A stretch of DNA of 64,000 nucleotides, from the sequence record OK040170.1, one strand, 5' to 3'. This document shows positions 25,797 through 39,085 of this stretch, piece after piece. A program made the position numbers and the translations under genes. The notes beneath the pieces are model-generated. The model was not told the DNA's origin and searched no databases. It worked only from the letters and a program-made list of their open reading frames with translations. Every line of letters starts with the position of its first letter. The first letter of the stretch is position 1.

Positions 25797-28700
25797 CTAT
25801 CGTGTCACTCGGGTATCGAACGGCAAACCGCCGGTCTTCTCTGGCATCCCTCCAGAAGTCGATGTCCGACGAAGTAAATCATCGGTATCAGAGTTCTTGG
25901 AGTTAGCCGGGATGTCTTCACCTTGAGTCTTACTTCCTTTTAAGTGCTTAAGGAGAGCATTGAGAATACCTGTGGTGTTTTCGCTGGTCAGTTTCTGATA
26001 AGTGAGTGAATCCTTCATAAAATCAACAGAGCTCATCTCACTCTTCGTTTTCTCCCTCACGACTTCTTGTCTACGAGTGACAGAGCTGCGTTGGAGTTCA
26101 CGACTTTCATTACGCTGATCTTGCGCTGCAGCAATCTCCGGAGCCACAGTACTCGGTGCAGTGATAGTTGGAACCGTATCAGTAGAACCGGTAAAGTTAG
26201 CCGTACCCAACGTACTACCTTTAGGCAAGGCACCTTTAGGATCGAACGGGGTAGGAGTTGATGCAGTAGCACCAGGGGTAGTTGGTGTTTCAGCAGGGAG
26301 AGCCGGAGTAGTTGGCGTACCACCTACGTTACGATCGCCCGCTTCGGAAGCAGCACGATTAGACAGAGCGTTAGCTTCATCCACGTACTGACCACCATTA
26401 CGGTTCAGATAACCGGACAGACTTCTCCGGAAATCACCGACCGTTCTAACACCGTTAAAGATCTCCGGGTTAGCCTTAGATACCTTATCGTAGTCGGTCA
26501 TCGCCTGACGAATATCCGTATCGTCAGATTTACTTAGCATCTTACGTGCACCGCCCGTTCCTAGGAAGTGAGCAGCGTAGAGGTCTTCTGCAGTCAATGG
26601 ACGACCAATGCTACCTAAAGCTTCTTGGTTCTTACGCATGTACTCAGCTGTGGCTAACATGTTAGCACGAGGATCCATCTGAGTAGCGTTAGGGTTAACT
26701 CCGTACTTCTTAACCAGAGTAGGGAGTATTTCCTTCCAAGTCGAGTCGATGAACTGACCGAAACCTGCGGCACTGGACTTAGGGTTTTTGGCAGCCGGGT
26801 TAAACCTCGACTCCTGTGCAACCATCGCAGCAAGAGCACCGGCATCCACACCTACCATCCGAGCAGCAGCCACGATGAGATCGCGGTTCTCTGCCCAACC
26901 TCTGCCCTGGGACTGAGGAAGGTCATTTACGCTACCGCCAGTACCTGCACCATGTTGCAACTCATTACCGTAGATACCTGAAGTCCCAGCGTTCTCGAAC
27001 GACGTGCCCGTAGTACCGTAACTGGTTGAGTACGAGTTAGTGTTACCACCTTGAGCGGATCCACTGTACTTGCCAGAAACAGCAATCTGGTTTTGCAACG
27101 CCATCTTAATCGCTTGACCCGTCTTAGTGTCGTCAAGTTTCTTACCGTCAAAGGTAGTCTTGTCGATCTCTTTCTGGGTACGGACTTTCTCTTGATAAAC
27201 TTCTTTCTTAGACTGATCCCTCAACGAGTCGAGGTTATCGTTCACGGAACTGGAATCCGCATTCATCCGACGACCTGGCCATGGAGACGCCAGTACTTGC
27301 CAGACAGAATACGTATTACCATTGAACTCAGTCTTAGCGCCAACCAGGAAGTTAGCAATCTTCAAGAGATCACTAGACTTAAGCGTTTTCCAAGAATCAA
27401 TAGGAGATGTCTGTGGAGAAATCTTTTTAGCCTGAGCGCAGAAGTTCAAGAAGGCCGGTAAGAAACGATGCTGGAACCAAGTCATCCAGTTAGTCTTCGC
27501 TTCCTTATCTGCGGTGTTGATACCAAACCGAGGTGCCCACAATGCGAAGGTTTTATCCATGTCACCATTGAAGGTAGCTTGGAACTTAGCATTGTACTGA
27601 ACCTGTTTAATCAGCTCGGATTCCATTACCAGCAGCAAGTTGACTTCTTCTTTCACTAATTGATTAAGACCATACGTTTTTACACGGATAGAACTGAGGT
27701 CATCAATTCGGTTAGAGATTTGGATCATCTCGTCTTGCTGGACGTTACCCGTGATACCGCCAGGAATACTGACTTTATCACCTGGGCTGTAGAACAGATC
27801 AGTTGATGGGTTAATGGCACGGTCATCTTGCTGTTGCATATTGCGCAGGGCATTCTGAACAGGAGTGATCGGCTTAGTCGCAAACGTACTCTTAGCTTGG
27901 TCGACAGATTTCTTCGACTGGTACGCCTTCTCTTGCTGGGAATATTTCTCGATAACGATATCGCGGTATTTAGCCGGATAGCCAGAGCCTACAACAGAAC
28001 GCTTACCAGGGAACGGTGAGGCGGAGATGTTGTAAGGTGAGTTTTCACCAGAACTTTCGATAAAGGTTTCCCTTGCGAACTGTGGTCGTTGTCCAGGTTC
28101 GAGGAAGTCAGCATCAGTCAACTTAGCTTTAGGATCCATCTTACGGAGTACCGTAAGGTTCTTAGAGAACACCGGAACAAAGCGTTTGTTGTACCAACGC
28201 ATCCACTCTACGACCTGACGTTGGTTTTGCAACTCAATACCGAACGACTCGAGGAGAGACTCGAACTCAAGAGAGCCAATACGAACACCGCCGTTAGGCA
28301 TGACCGTCGTTTTCTTGAGTACAGCTTCTTCTAACGCCAAGATCTTACCGCGAGATTCACCATCGTTAACATCGGCACCATATTGAGCAATGCGATAGTC
28401 ACGAAGTGGAGTCATGCGGTTACTGTACATCTGCCAACCTTTATAGATCAGGTAACCTGTACCTGCTACAGCAGCGGCAATAGCCAGACCAGGAGCAGAG
28501 ACTAATCCACCGAGTGCAGCTGCACCCATACGGAGAACTGTACCTGCGCCACCTAATGCAAAGCGACCTGCTGCCAATGCACCGCGACCAGCCAAACGAC
28601 CAACCTTACCTAAGAGACGACCACCACGACGAAGGATACCGCCTTTACGACCACCGCCTGCCAAATCACCGATGTCACCTAGAGCATCAGCACCTTTACG

Positions 28701-32482: not shown

Positions 32483-34120
32483 ATGCGTCTCAATGAAATG
32501 CCTTTTAACATTTTCATTATGGACGTTACTCCAGAACTTATTCGTTCCATGCGAGCAACGACCACAACTGAAATTTTCGAAACGGGCACACGTAACTTCA
32601 ACCGGGACGGTTTGTTTAGCGTAGAGACTTACGGTACGCTAGGTAGCCCAGAACGTGACGGAAGATTCAGCTATATTAATTTAAACACGTCCATTTTCCA
32701 CCCTTTGATTTACAAACGTTTGGGGACATTGAAACGTCTCTATACCGAAATTATCGAAGGTACTCGTTACGCGATATTTGACGAAGAGAAAAAAGACTTC
32801 ATCCCAGCCGATGAGACGGTTGGTGAAACAGGCTTTGCTTTCTTCGTTAAACATTTCCCTAACCTCGTTATAGAGGAAGGCGATTCTGAGATCCGTAACC
32901 TTCGCGTTCGCTTGATTAACGAAAACCGTAATAAAGCAATGCTCGAACGCATCTTGGTGATGCCGGCAGGTTTACGTGACCTGATTGTTGAACCGGGCAC
33001 AGGAAGAACCTCAGAAGACGAGATCAACAAATTCTACCGTGCAATGATTTCCATCGCTAACGGTATCTCCGGTTCATCCACCAACCGCAATGACCCAATC
33101 ATCAACTATTCTCGTCTGAGTTTACAACGTAACTTCAACGAGATCTTTGAGTACGTCTTTAACATGATTAAAGGCAAGAAGGGGTTTGCGTTGTCCAAGT
33201 GGGCATCTCGTAAAATCCTGAACGGTACCGCTAACGTAATCACGCCGATGAACGTAGGTACTGATCGCCTGGGCTCTAACCGTACTCCAGTCATCAACGA
33301 CGTCCAGCTCGGTCTGTATCAAGTAATTAAAGCAGTACTTCCTAAGACACGTTACTTCATTCGTAACGGTTGGGTTGGCCAGGTATTCTCCGGTAACACC
33401 GAAGATGAAGTTCGCTTGACCGATCCTAAGACACTGCGCGCAGTATTCGTAAAACCTTCTCCAGAGTCCGTCACTCGTTGGACGACTAAAGAGGGTATCG
33501 ATGCAGAGATTACCCGGTACAAGATCCTAGGTTTCCGTCAGCGTCCAATTATGGTCGATGGCTACTACCTTGGTCTGCTTTATGCTGGCCCACAAGGTTG
33601 GCGTTTCTTTGCAGATATTAATGAGCTGCCTCAAGGGTTCGACAAAAAGTATGTCTACCCTATTAACATGACCTCTCTTTATTATCTGAGCGGTTATCGT
33701 GAGTGGCACAAAATGGCCGGTATCGTTACCCGTTATCCGGTAACTGGCCCAGGCTCTACTTACATAGGAAACATCTATTGTAAGACAACTCAGAAGACGC
33801 AATCTCTCCCTGAGTTGGACGAAAGTTGGCATCGCCTTGGTCCGGACTTCATTGCCAATGAGTTCCCAGACCAGTCGCAAAAAGCGACTCACTATATGAC
33901 CCTCAGTCCACACCCGTCACGTATCGCCCCGCTGGGCGCGGACTATGACGGTGACCGTTGTACTTTCACTGCAGTGTACGGTCGTGATTCTCTGGAAGAG
34001 TACGAACTCATCAAGAGTAAGAAAGAGTGGTACGTATCTGCTCGAGGTAGCCTGGCACTTTCTGCTGACGTAGATAACCTCGACTTGGTACTCCGTAATA
34101 TCACTGGCGGGCCGAAATAA
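32483..34120 (+). CDS. rpoC: Virion RNA polymerase beta' subunit, N-terminal part (phiKZ gp180-like)
   Basis: DGLFS..YG, VMPAGLRD, RYP and catalytic ADYDGD (NADFDGD equivalent). Confidence 0.93.
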   Translation: MRLNEMPFNIFIMDVTPELIRSMRATTTTEIFETGTRNFNRDGLFSVETYGTLGSPERDGRFSYINLNTSIFHPLIYKRLGTLKRLYTEIIEGTRYAIFDEEKKDFIPADETVGETGFAFFVKHFPNLVIEEGDSEIRNLRVRLINENRNKAMLERILVMPAGLRDLIVEPGTGRTSEDEINKFYRAMISIANGISGSSTNRNDPIINYSRLSLQRNFNEIFEYVFNMIKGKKGFALSKWASRKILNGTANVITPMNVGTDRLGSNRTPVINDVQLGLYQVIKAVLPKTRYFIRNGWVGQVFSGNTEDEVRLTDPKTLRAVFVKPSPESVTRWTTKEGIDAEITRYKILGFRQRPIMVDGYYLGLLYAGPQGWRFFADINELPQGFDKKYVYPINMTSLYYLSGYREWHKMAGIVTRYPVTGPGSTYIGNIYCKTTQKTQSLPELDESWHRLGPDFIANEFPDQSQKATHYMTLSPHPSRIAPLGADYDGDRCTFTAVYGRDSLEEYELIKSKKEWYVSARGSLALSADVDNLDLVLRNITGGPK

Positions 34121-34149
34121 ATTAATTACTCTTAGGAGTGTCTCTGACA

Positions 34150-37100
34150 ATGAGTAACATTACTTATCCCGAACTCTATCAACGATTCGGTATACGTTCT
34201 ACTTCGGGGTTAACTACCCCGAAACTGTTTAATCTGGAGAACTTCAAACTCCCTCGTGGAGCGATCGTTCACTACCTGCCTCAGTCGGTTTCCGATTTAG
34301 GCCCGGACGATCAGTTCTTCCCGATTATCAATGAACGTCTTCGTCCCTACGTAGACCAGGTTACCGATATGACCTCCCATGAAGGAGCTCCTCGACGTCG
34401 TGGTGCCTTTAACGTAGAGAACCTGAAGCGCCAGTGGCTGATTCGTAATCGTCGCTACAGACGCGTTACAGACATCGCCAGAGCGTTAGACGATCGTCAA
34501 ACTGCAATCGTTGTTAACTACGCTTTGATCCCGATGCAATGGAAATACCAACCGGTCCCAATGGCCCGCTGGTTCCGTTTCCAAAACCTGATGAAGACGT
34601 TCGCTGACCGTGTCAAATATTTCGGTGAACAGTCTAGCCGTCCCCAGTTCCTCTTCCTTACTCTGCCGGATGTATTACCGTCACGTCAATACCTGAACGT
34701 ATCGGTTGAGGCCTACGATGTAATTCAGGATGCCCGTCAGGCTCAGCAAAGTAATCTGCAGAGCCAACAAGGCGATACTATCGCACGGTACTACGATAAC
34801 CTCTATCCGGGTATCATGACTGGCCAGGGTACTGCGTTCTCTAACGAGGCGTTTGATGCCAGTGCGTTAGGTTGGGGCGATGAACCTGCGTTCGAATCCT
34901 TCGATGAATGTTCACTCTCAATGGGTGATGATGATCCGATCGTAGCCGTTGAGTCGATGAACCGTATTCGCCTGGGTTACTTCCAAGATGACGCGTCTCT
35001 GTTCCTTTCTGATCTTTGGAAGTGGATGTCAGAGAACCGCGATGAATCCATCCTGGGTTCCATCCCAAGTAATGCATTGAAGAACCTTAACCTGGTTGTC
35101 ATGCGTAACGGTAAGTTCAGTCTGCTCTCCTTCGATAAACTCGACCAATGGGTTAAGTCTGAAGAGAACGAACGTGGTATCGGTTTCGGTTCAATGTCTC
35201 AGACGATGGATCGCTACTTGCAGAACATCGTAACGACGACTTCGGTATCCGACAAAATCACCGTTGAAGAAGAAGTTGCAGAAACCGGTGAAACGGAAGT
35301 CAGCGACATCAAAGTCCCTGAACCACAACCAGGCGACCCGGATGTAGATGTCAGCGTTGGTGACAAAGGCGAAAGTGACATCGCACGTCTTCGTCGTAGT
35401 GCTCAGCGTGTAACTAAAACTCCTCGTGAGATTTTGGCAACTAAGCGCAGTGAAACGCCAATTCAAAATACCGACGTCACGGCGACCACAAGTTTCCAAC
35501 CCGAGGAAACGACTGTTGTAGTAGACAAGCCTACTCCGGGTAAATCGGAAGAGGAAGTCATCGATACCAACAACCCGTTGATCAAACCGGTTGAAAAACG
35601 TTCCCGTGATCTCCTGAGTAAAGGACTTATCTCGGGTAACGAGTTTAAACGTCACGTACGCCTCGCTAACAGCTTCAAGAGTATCAAAGCACCATTCGGT
35701 GAAGGTACACTGGAAGACTTCATGAAGATCCCTCACGAGCAACTGTGGGACTTTAAAGCGAAAGAGATTCCGGACATCCCTCACGTGGTCGATAAGACCA
35801 TGTTGAAGTCTACCTTACTGAACTACGACCAAGATTACATCAGTAATGTCTTCCAGAAAGATGTTGCAAACATGGTCGTCAGTTTACAGAAGGCAGGTCT
35901 GGCAATTACGGATTATCGCGTCGAGAAGAAATCCGATGCGTTGAACGACCTCTACGACTACACGATTAAAGTCGTGCCGGTCTATGGTAGTCCTTCTACT
36001 ATCCGCTTCCAATTACCGGCAGTGGATAAGAATGGTAAGTATCGCGTGAATGGCACTAAGTACTTCATGCGTAAACTTAAGTTCGATAAACCAATCCGTA
36101 AGATCTCTCCGAGCATCGTGGCGTTGTCTACGTACTACGGTAAACTCTTCGTTGAGCGCTCTTCGCGCGCAAGTGAAGATTTGGGCCATGTCCTCGTTGA
36201 CCTGATCGAAAGGTCTAGTCAGCTCGACGTCCCTACCGTTACCGATTTGGTACTGGGCAATACATTCACGGAAGATCAGGACGTACCGCGCGAATATTCC
36301 GCATTGGCAAAAGAGTTCGTCTCCTTTGTACTGAATGGAATCCTGTTTACATTCGACTACCCTAACCTGGCGAATAACTACACGGAAGACGTCGTAGTGG
36401 CAGCTAAGGCGAAGGGCTGGGTTCCAGTTGGTCGCAAAGGTAAAGAGTTCATCTTCATGAATAATGAAGGTAAGCTCGTCGACGCTAAAGGTAATGTGTT
36501 AGGTTCTATCAACGAGATGTTGGGATTACCTGATGAGAAACTTCCGGTTGAGCAAGTGATCGTTAAGATCATGGGCGAAGAGATTCCGATGGCTGCGATC
36601 CTCATGTATCACATGGGCATCACTAAGTTGATGAACACTCTCCCAGTAAAACCAGAGCGCCGTGTTAAAGGCACTCGCGTCGAACCTGTCCCAGGTACGT
36701 TCGAGTTAGTCTTTGCTGATGAAGTTTGGCGCTTCCCTGTCCACGGTGGTAATAGTAGTCTGATTTGGGCTTCCCTCCAACGTTGGAAGAAATACCTCCG
36801 TAGCTTCTCTGTACAAGAGCTGGACAATCCGGACACCTTTAACCTGCTGTTCGGTATGGCTAACCTGAGTGCGCGTTACGTACGTGAGATCGACAACATC
36901 AATGCGTTGTTCTTAGATCCTATCGCTATTGACGTACTGCGCGATATGAAAGAACCGACCGAGTTGAACGACCTGTTCATCAAGGCAGCTTTCTATCTGG
37001 TGACCGATAACTATCCGAGTGATATTTCCTCAGACGGTTCTCTGTTCCGTGGTTACGAACGTATGCCTGGCGAAGTCTATCGTACTTTGTCCAACGCTTA

Positions 37101-37509
37101 TCGTTCTTACGCCAGTCAGCCTGTTAGTTCCCGTGCAACTATCGATATCCCGCCGTTTGAAGTATTGGCGGCAATCCAACGTGACCCATCCGTCGCCATC
37201 GCTGAGGATTCTAACCCAATCCACAACCTTAAAGAGAAAGAGAACGTAACTTACTCTGGTACAGGCGGTCGGTCTAAACGTGCAATGGTTCGCCGTACTC
37301 GTGCGTTCCATAAATCGGATATCGGTATTCGTGCAGAAGCATCGGTGGATAACGGTGACGTAGGGATTAACACATTCCTTACCGCTAACCCTAACCTGAC
37401 CTCGCTTCGTGGTACAGCAGTTCCAACTGTTGATCCGGATCCGAAGAACGGTGTCGGTAACCTTCTGAGTACGTCAGCGCTCGTAGCTCCATTTGCGACA
37501 TACGACGAT
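34150..37509 (+). CDS. rpoB: Virion RNA polymerase beta subunit N/middle part, exon 1 (phiKZ gp178-like)
   Basis: ATG 34150 with AGGAG RBS; RpoB motifs NPIHNL..K..VT..GTGG, ...APFATYDD; the ORF runs into an in-frame TAG 15 nt inside the intron. Confidence 0.9.
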
Positions 37510-37933
37510 CAATATTTACTTTAGTTCACTAACTGAAGTACGGGTCGCTTCTGGGAGTAACCCCAGTCGAATAACTCTCTTAATTGCGGGAACCCACTAA
37601 AGCCACACTGCTACAACGGAGTTCGAAAGGACAAACGTGAATGCTCTAAAAAGTGTGTGGATGTACAATGGGGAATCGAGTTCGGTAACCAATCCGATCT
37701 TTCGCAGCGAAGCCTCTACCGTATCGTAGATACCACGGGGAACGTTCAACGACTATCGAAACGACATGACACGGATGTGTAGCATGTAACGGAGTAGAGT
37801 AGACCACTCGAGCGAGGGTCGAAATAGAGAGCGCCCTAAAGAATAGGGCGATGATATAGTCTCCTGAACTAGCTAACAGCTAGGGTAGCGGGTAATGCCG
37901 CAGGTGAATTTAGCGAATTCATTGACGACTAGA
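37510..37933 (+). mobile_element. Self-splicing group I intron (IA-like), 424 nt, no internal ORF
   Basis: P element AATTGCGGGAA 37582-37592; Q-like CGCAGC 37703-37708; R GTTCAACGACTAT 37744-37756; S ATGATATAGTCT 37851-37862. P3 CTCTCT/AGAGAG; P7 GACTAT/ATAGTC; P8 CGCCCT/AGGGCG; P2 and P9 hairpins. P1 exon CGAT paired to IGS GTCG with a U-G wobble. Removal restores YDD|PKR (RpoB HDD-ANR). Confidence 0.9.
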
Positions 37934-39085
37934 CCAAAGCGAGTAAGTTTCATCTCTATTCAGCAATCTCACGTTATCGCTTCTAGTGACGCAATGGTTT
38001 CTCCTATCCGTACTGGGTACGAGCAAGTCATGGCTCACCGTGTTGACGATACCTTCGCTACCGCGGCTAAAGGCCCAGGGGTAGTGACCGAGAAAGGCCC
38101 TAACTACATGGTCGTAAAATACGACGATGAGAAATTAGGTGAGGAGCGTATCCAATTAGGTCGTCGCTTCGGTGTGGTAACTGGTCACGTTGTTCCACAC
38201 GCCGTAGTATCTGAACTGGAAGTGGGTAAGCGAGTAGTAGAAGGTGAGATCGTAAGTTACCATCCTGGGTTCTTCCAGCGCGACTGGCGTGACCCGACTC
38301 AGGTGCTGTGGAAGTCAGGTACTCTGGCTAACATCGCACTGATGGAAAACAACTCGACCTTTGAGGATGCGAGTTTGATCTCCGAATCACTCTCTAAACG
38401 TCTGCACACGCCGACTAGCCATACGCGTACTATCTTGGTTAACTTTAACCAGGGTATTCGTAATCTGGTAGCGGTTGGCGAACATGTAGATAATGAAACG
38501 GTTCTCGGCTACATTGAGGATGAGGTTTCTTCTGCGAGTGATTTGTTCGACGAGTCCACTTTGGAAGCATTGAAACGTTTGGGTTCTCCAGCTCCGCGTG
38601 CTAAGTATGTAGGAGATATCGAGAAAATCGAGGTAATCTATTTCGGTGAGAAGGAAGACATGTCTCCTTCATTACGGAAAATTGCGGATTACTACGATAA
38701 CCAACGCGCCAAGCTTTCTAAGGCTTTGGGTGGTACAGAAGCGAAGACTGGGCAGATTTTCACGCCTACGCGATTGGACGGTCTCTCTATTGAGATTGAT
38801 ATGATGGCGATTCGTATCTACATTACCCATGACCGCTCTATGGGTGACGGGGACAAGATCGTGGTGGGTAACCAGAAAAAGTCCGTGGTGTCTGGGGTGT
38901 TCACTGGTAAGTGCCGTACTGTCGGTCCAGTGATTCCTGGCGATAAACCATGGGACGTAGATCTCCAGTTCTCGTACAAGTCTGTAAACGCACGTATCGT
39001 AAACTCCGCGATGATGTCGGGGATGGTTAACATCCTTCTCCAGCACATTGCCACTGCGATGCTGAACGCTTACAACGAAGAGTAG
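37934..39085 (+). CDS. rpoB: Virion RNA polymerase beta subunit, exon 2
   Basis: PKRVSFISIQQSH (ANRALMGANMQRQA equivalent), N-x-EDA-x-LISE, GDKIVVGNQKK (GDKxxGRHGNKG equivalent); spliced product about 1503 aa. Confidence 0.9.
   Translation, partial: PKRVSFISIQQSHVIASSDAMVSPIRTGYEQVMAHRVDDTFATAAKGPGVVTEKGPNYMVVKYDDEKLGEERIQLGRRFGVVTGHVVPHAVVSELEVGKRVVEGEIVSYHPGFFQRDWRDPTQVLWKSGTLANIALMENNSTFEDASLISESLSKRLHTPTSHTRTILVNFNQGIRNLVAVGEHVDNETVLGYIEDEVSSASDLFDESTLEALKRLGSPAPRAKYVGDIEKIEVIYFGEKEDMSPSLRKIADYYDNQRAKLSKALGGTEAKTGQIFTPTRLDGLSIEIDMMAIRIYITHDRSMGDGDKIVVGNQKKSVVSGVFTGKCRTVGPVIPGDKPWDVDLQFSYKSVNARIVNSAMMSGMVNILLQHIATAMLNAYNEE

Follow-up and report, generated by a model that had tools for sequence, protein, structure and literature searches.

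Two annotated genes or one interrupted gene

Is the beta subunit of the virion RNA polymerase (vRNAP) of a Serratia jumbo phage encoded by two genes, or by a single gene into which a ribozyme has been inserted? We analysed a 64,000-nucleotide stretch of DNA (hereafter, the window) from phage BUCT660 (OK040170; genus Moabitevirus; 272.7 kb), with window position 1 corresponding to approximately position 124001 of the record. Between 36500 and 39000, the window is 100% identical to BUCT660 and 99.7% identical to phage Yaphecito. The program-made ORF list contains two ORFs on the plus strand, 34138..37524 and 37895..39085, just as the initial annotation of this DNA had described, and OK040170 itself is annotated with two beta CDSs and no intron. 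Introns are likewise unmentioned in the genome announcements of BUCT660 and of phage Moabite. The initial annotation had termed the intron ‘hidden’, which is apt for the record but not for the site, as an intron at the same position of phage PhiPA3 has already been published (PMC11620839).

In phage Moabite, virion-associated RNAP beta is annotated as an uninterrupted CDS of 4512 nt. Alignment of both junctions revealed an exact 424-nt insertion relative to Moabite at 37510-37933—the very interval proposed at the outset—located between ...GACGAT and CCAAAG (CCGAAG in Moabite); the boundary can slide by one base because a C is found on both sides. The exons (3360 + 1152 nt) sum to the 4512 nt of Moabite, and excision yields an uninterrupted, conserved gene. 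With respect to the start of exon 1, the program called the ORF from GTG 34138, whereas ATG 34150 is annotated in both BUCT660 and Moabite.

The joined protein reads ...APFATYDD|PKRVSFISIQQ, which is the same in Moabite, Kodama and 2050HW, and the predicted spliced protein is 99.7-100% identical across the junction. The stretch ATYDDPKRV also recurs in a Klebsiella jumbo-phage homologue of 65% identity, and a PDB sequence search aligned the junction with HDDANR of Thermus RpoB. Since the intronless homologues and the Thermus RpoB alignment agree, we take the host gene to be vRNAP beta and the junction to fall within its DD-x-x-R motif; on both counts, the first reading of the locus (a vRNAP beta gene whose DD-x-x-R motif is restored by excision) held. 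The insertion point lies directly 3’ of two conserved Asp codons, in the region of E. coli RpoB D674/D675. Pfam returned no family for either vRNAP beta half (34138-39085), and the beta identity is based on the homologues, the PDB match and the published homology to phiKZ gp178. The upstream 545-aa subunit (32483-34120) likewise gave merely a weak, sub-threshold match to Rpb1 domain 1 in Pfam; these virion RNAP subunits escape standard domain annotation.

The beta segment has homologues in 298 phage records, and in 287 of them the match is unbroken and spans at least 80% of the query. BUCT660 and Yaphecito have the segment in two pieces separated by 424 nt, and 11 additional split places were counted. 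A search for loci related to exon 2 returned two Klebsiella-phage loci only, both intronless. The correct gene model would be one 1503-aa protein broken by a ribozyme, as opposed to the two proteins annotated.

The insertion has the fold of a group I intron

A default Rfam scan of the window at gathering thresholds returned no match, because the relevant score (37.5 bits) lies below the gathering score of 50. The match in question, to the group I model RF00028, spans 37500-37883 on the plus strand and all 253 model positions, with an E value of 7.5e-08 on 851 nt and of 5.5e-9 on the whole phage record. In the model search proposed in the initial annotation, the full model was covered at a low E value, but the gathering score was not reached; the score is lowered by long insertions in P1, P5 and P7.1/7.2. 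Canonical elements are visible in the RF00028 alignment (AAUUGCGGGAA, UUCGCAGC, GUUCAACGACUA and GAUAUAGUC), and the P, Q, R and S elements were all found in the intron, along with the core P3-P8 helices including the P3/P7 pseudoknot.

The helix map from P1 to P9.2 (Table 1) was tested on an alignment of ten related introns, with slid partners as the control. Across the ten introns, 87% of cells were paired, as compared to 34-49% in the slid controls. Compensatory changes affecting both sides were present in 34 of 56 pairs, and none of 500 shuffles reached the observed covariation score; the covariation tool carries a caveat regarding relatedness, which the slid controls preserve. Local folds recovered P1, P2, P7.1, P7.2, P9, P9.1 and P9.2. 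The claim of a group I fold with P, Q, R and S elements and P7.1/P7.2-like hairpins was borne out.

Table 1 Features of the interrupted vRNAP beta gene and its intron, in window coordinates.
Feature	Position	Strand	Remarks
Exon 1, virion RNAP beta	34150..37509	+	3360 nt, length equal to Moabite; ends ...ATYDD with U37509
Group I intron without ORF	37510..37933	+	424 nt; insertion relative to Moabite, RF00028 match, covariation
P1	37506-10 / 37543-47	+	exon CGAU and intron C pair with guide GGUCG; U37509.G37544 at 5’ splice site
P1 extension hairpin, 10 bp, in P1 loop	37517-40	+	RF00028 alignment, local fold
In-frame UAG, four codons into intron, 5’ of guide	37522..37524	+	ends ORF1 as ...DDQYLL (stop)
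P2	37551-66	+	local fold
P3	37575-80 / 37826-31	+	RF00028 alignment, covariation
J3/4 and P4 5’ strand (‘P’ element)	37582-90	+	RF00028 alignment, covariation
P4	37585-90 / 37701-06	+	3’ strand 37701-06 is the ‘Q’ element
P5	37593-96 / 37669-72	+	
P5a	37603-08 / 37655-60	+	
P5b GAAA hairpin	37621-32	+	
Extra hairpin, between P5 and P4 3’ strand	37675-98	+	
P6, P6a, P6b	37707-45	+	RF00028 alignment, covariation
R element with P7 5’ strand	37744..37755	+	covariation alignment
P7	37749-55 / 37857-62	+	six pairs, invariant in 10/10 introns
P7.1 hairpin	37764-87	+	local fold; at RF00028 insertion point between P7 and P3’
P7.2 hairpin	37802-20	+	local fold; at RF00028 insertion point between P7 and P3’
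P8	37832-38 / 37844-50	+	
J8/7 and P7 3’ strand (‘S’ element)	37851-62	+	
P9	37869-83	+	covariation, local fold
P9.1	37888-901	+	covariation, local fold
P9.2	37905-21	+	covariation, local fold
Candidate ORF2 start: in-frame ATG (P9.1 loop) and 12 more codons into exon 2	37895..37933	+	AGGG 9 nt upstream
3’ tail, single-stranded, 12 nt	37922..37933	+	UUGACGACUAGA; last frame-restoring base A37933
Exon 2, virion RNAP beta	37934..39085	+	1152 nt; begins PKRVSFISIQQ

Within P7, the G37751-C37861 pair, beside the bulged C37750, is invariant in 10 of 10 aligned introns. By the layout of Tetrahymena G264-C311, we take it to be the canonical guanosine-binding pair. The hallmark hairpins P7.1 and P7.2 assign the intron to subgroup IA. 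No endonuclease ORF was found: the ORFs of the intron itself measure 41-53 aa and have no Pfam match, in line with the earlier remark that it carries no homing ORF. Judged by its sequence, the insertion is a genuine and correctly delimited group I intron without an ORF.

An early in-frame stop ahead of the guide sequence is usual in phage group I introns. The suggestions of the initial annotation that the enzyme depends on splicing of this copy, and that splicing may serve as a late-infection control point, gained no support from the analysis. Phage introns of subgroup IA2 (T4 td, nrdB and sunY; SPO1; Twort) are self-splicing, occupy conserved sites of essential enzyme genes, and feature P7.1/P7.2 together with a stop codon that lies in frame shortly past the 5’ splice site; we liken the BUCT660 intron to them by these general features. 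The T4, SPO1 and Twort introns reside in other host genes and terminate in G, as opposed to the A of BUCT660.

Four states of one insertion site

Introns of this kind are already known at this site. The gp210 intron of PhiPA3 lies in the vRNAP beta gene gp211/209, a homologue of phiKZ gp178 (Birkholz et al., Science 2024; PMC11620839), and was termed a ‘putative’ self-splicing intron (PMC11620839). We located the PhiPA3 ribozyme, which ends ...GAAGAUCUCG| and is followed by the exon sequence MKRVGFISIQQ. It shares with the BUCT660 intron the host gene family, the insertion directly after two conserved Asp, and an architecture in which P9, P9.1 and a P9.2 closed by a loop of the CGAA type are followed by a tail that is single-stranded. 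It differs in the type of P7.1/P7.2, and whereas the PhiPA3 intron harbors the HNH nicking endonuclease gp210 and a terminal G, the BUCT660 copy has no ORF and ends in A. The unusual feature of the BUCT660 copy is its terminal A. The PhiPA3 record (HQ630627) contains four RF00028 matches over the gathering score (68-83 bits), of which the gp210 one alone is discussed in PMC11620839.

Phages 98-99% identical to BUCT660 over 24 kb present this site in four states: empty, occupied by an intron without an ORF, or occupied by introns with either of two different HNH genes. The site is empty in Moabite and holds the 424-nt intron in BUCT660 and Yaphecito. Kodama has a 1682-nt intron encoding a 413-aa NUMOD1/I-HmuI-like protein, which is also present in Totoro, an 80%-identical phage. 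In 2050HW, a 1371-nt intron encodes a 328-aa NUMOD4 + HNH_3 protein, and search rows for Haymo and ParM-25 show a like pattern. The introns of Kodama, Totoro, 2050HW, Haymo and ParM-25 are all unannotated, and their insertion site is identical to that of BUCT660; over 90 nt of exon on each side, Kodama is identical to BUCT660 and 2050HW differs at 4 positions. Introns of the Kodama/Totoro/2050HW type (1371-1682 nt) carry their endonuclease genes in the P1 loop and terminate in G, whereas BUCT660 lacks that segment. Four states of a single site offer a compact natural setting in which to study how introns are gained, lose their endonucleases and recombine with one another, and extend the story of competition between PhiPA3 and phiKZ to enterobacterial jumbo phages.

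In these comparisons, the BUCT660 intron is a mosaic, composed of a Kodama-type first 249 nt minus the ORF and a last 175 nt of another type. Its nucleotides 1-22 and 23-249 are 95% identical to Kodama 1-22 and 1288-1514, and the 1265-nt ORF segment in the Kodama P1 loop is missing. The last 175 nt gave no match to Kodama except for the S element, and the P7.1-P7.2 region is not of the Kodama type but resembles the intron of a beta’-like gene (see below), with the Totoro copy being the closest. Within the 95%-identical half, two double changes, both fully compensatory, set P3 apart from that of Kodama (CUCUCU/AGAGAG versus CUUCCU/AGGAAG). The chimeric RNA has therefore stayed foldable, and its fold was under selection in this lineage.

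With no HNH endonuclease, the BUCT660 intron is a derivative that has no ORF and falls short of a complete mobile intron. Lacking a homing enzyme, it probably cannot move by itself and is passed on through vertical descent or recombination, although it might be mobilised by HNH enzymes that related phages encode.

A terminal A at the proposed 3’ splice site

The frame-restoring boundary, ...GACUAGA|CC, makes A37933, and not a G, the final base of the intron. A 3’-terminal G is near-universal in group I introns, though not strictly defining, and each of the five relatives whose ends are defined has one (Kodama, Totoro, 2050HW, PhiPA3 and the beta’-gene intron). The G residues of the BUCT660 tail are located at 37924 and 37927, both in frame (adding 3 or 2 aa, respectively), and at 37932, out of frame. 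Yaphecito, a sewage isolate from the US (BUCT660 is from China), carries the same 424 nt down to the terminal A; since this independent isolate shares it, the terminal A is no assembly error. The surrounding 24 kb of the two phages are 99.1% identical (0.9% differing), whereas the intron shows 0 differences in 424 nt where ~3.8 would be expected, weak evidence for either constraint or recent exchange.

Aligning the tail to those of the relatives is ambiguous, with either A37933 or G37932 as the counterpart of the terminal G. P9.0 pairing was dropped as a means of locating the last base, since the tails of the relatives (UCUG, UCCG, UUCG, CUCG) fit no single register. Shifted 5’ splice sites that would permit a terminal G were rejected; the sole U.G pair is at U37509, and Kodama shares the guide sequence. 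Pattern searches of IMG/VR and metagenomes found no diverged copies of the 3’ domain from which to judge how well the terminal A is conserved: IMG/VR had no match to the tail pattern, the S/J7-9 pattern had chance matches only, and two metagenome patterns for the 3’ domain had no matches. The 93 IMG/VR introns that have the R element in common with BUCT660 are 62-76% alike, in the core only. Searches of public RNA runs turned up no RNA across the junction, and metagenomic RNA contigs match only the 35-nt conserved P5b segment or the end of a Kodama-type intron.

In the splicing reaction that we propose, an external guanosine would attack 3’ of U37509, which forms the U.G pair in P1, and the exons would be joined as GAU|CCA. 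A37933 would have to replace the usual terminal G in this joining, which would give full-length beta (1503 aa, ~167 kDa) with the junction peptide NGVGNLLSTSALVAPFATYDDPK. A candidate P10, made of two G-C pairs (C37934-G37543 and C37935-G37542), fits the GAU|CCA junction only. A terminal A has a precedent in the group I intron ND5-717 of hexacorals, which ends in A yet is removed precisely in vivo (PMC6545197, PMC8146996). The terminal A in place of G is what ND5-717 shares with the BUCT660 intron; it differs in being mitochondrial, in holding whole genes in P8, and in its unrelated sequence and host.

Been and Perrotta (1991) reportedly found that changing the terminal G of the Tetrahymena intron to A blocks exon ligation unless the binding pair is changed too. 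In BUCT660, the guanosine-binding pair of P7 is a canonical G-C while the required terminal base is A, which argues against omega-A splicing and for the principal competing account, in which the intron is real but the exons are not ligated at the correct site. Beta would then consist of two polypeptides made from unspliced RNA and assembled as a split subunit: ORF1, ending ...ATYDD+QYLL (~125 kDa), and ORF2, initiated at ATG 37895, with 13 extra residues before PKRV... (~44 kDa) and starting MPQVNLANSLTTR. At its 3’ end, the intron indeed has 39 nt that are open in the frame of exon 2 with an ATG as the first codon, and the AGGG located 9 nt upstream is about as good a ribosome site as the weak ones of some neighbouring genes. 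Also in favour of two polypeptides, phiKZ-like phages have RNAP subunits that are naturally split at other places. However, the break would fall three residues before the Arg of the conserved DD-x-x-R motif, as aligned with Thermus RpoB, and leave floppy extensions on either side; the ribozyme fold has been kept intact, with a P3 that has adapted to the new 3’ domain; and 13 open codons that include an ATG could plausibly arise by chance. On balance we regard a split beta as unlikely.

Other 3’ splice sites would reconcile the ribozyme with a terminal G. Splicing at the upstream G37927 or G37924 would agree with the canonical G site and, both being in frame with U37509, would add TR or TTR, respectively, between DD and PKR. 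Neither position offers a P10 pairing, however; the spacing from Arg to DD is constant in Moabite, Kodama, 2050HW, Totoro, the Klebsiella phage and Thermus RpoB, and PhiPA3 exon 2 keeps the same spacing from Arg to the junction, which together render such insertions very improbable. Slightly more improbable still is splicing at G37932, the G nearest to the end expected from homology and the one that an alignment with the Kodama and PhiPA3 tails places at the terminal-G position: the mRNA would gain an extra A and give a mostly frameshifted product, with functional beta arising from a rare event only. This would truncate an essential enzyme, yet two viable isolates have the sequence, and the site bears no known frameshift signal. 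That the insertion is an unrelated element or an assembly artefact instead of an intron was hinted at by the Rfam score under the gathering threshold; the full-length model match, covariation, the identical independent assembly and the related introns at the same site effectively refute it.

We consider rather probable the reading as a whole, in which the subgroup IA intron, a mosaic whose first part is of Kodama type, interrupts vRNAP beta and omega-A splicing would give full-length beta. The omega-A step at A37933, taken on its own, has about an even chance, and we favour it over beta split between two ORFs. To our knowledge, ligation after a terminal A in the presence of a canonical pocket has so far been found only in hexacoral mitochondria; BUCT660 may supply the first functional intron of this sort in a phage or bacterium, although we place that claim a little short of even. 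The terminal A makes for a sharp and cheap experiment on the chemistry of the 3’ splice site. Should omega-A splicing hold true, this chemistry could be dissected genetically, because the intron sits in the gene of an essential enzyme that is packaged in the virion of a phage amenable to culture. Should splicing fail, the locus would capture an RNAP subunit gene in the course of being divided by an intron into two working genes, and would suggest a route by which the split RNAP subunits of phiKZ-like phages originated.

Sequence exchange around the site and a second intron

The empty allele of Moabite differs from BUCT660 by 8 synonymous substitutions within the 25 nt around the site (relative to window 37500-37509 and 37934-37948), in a gene that is 1.8% diverged as a whole. 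They map to -10, -7, +3, +9 and +12 to +15, and one Ser codon is changed from AGT to TCG. This cluster resembles an endonuclease target that has been recoded, or else the boundary of a co-conversion tract.

Exchange among intron copies is patchy. In the segment corresponding to window 37610-37645, Kodama has the P5b hairpin of the beta’-gene intron, while the vRNAP intron of Totoro carries the BUCT660 version; the P7.2 of BUCT660 matches the beta’-gene intron of Totoro. The 35-nt P5b segment is also found in several unrelated wastewater contigs. The extra hairpin at 37675-37698 is shared by BUCT660, Kodama and Totoro, and is missing from 2050HW, PhiPA3 and the beta’-gene introns.

The beta’-gene intron lies outside the window, at 25857-26152 of the BUCT660 record. 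It is a second group I intron (296 nt; RF00028, 58 bits) and splits a beta’-like gene, annotated ‘RpoBC’, within the catalytic NCDFDG|D motif, with canonical ends (U|...G|). Moabite is without it, and Kodama, 2050HW and Totoro have it.
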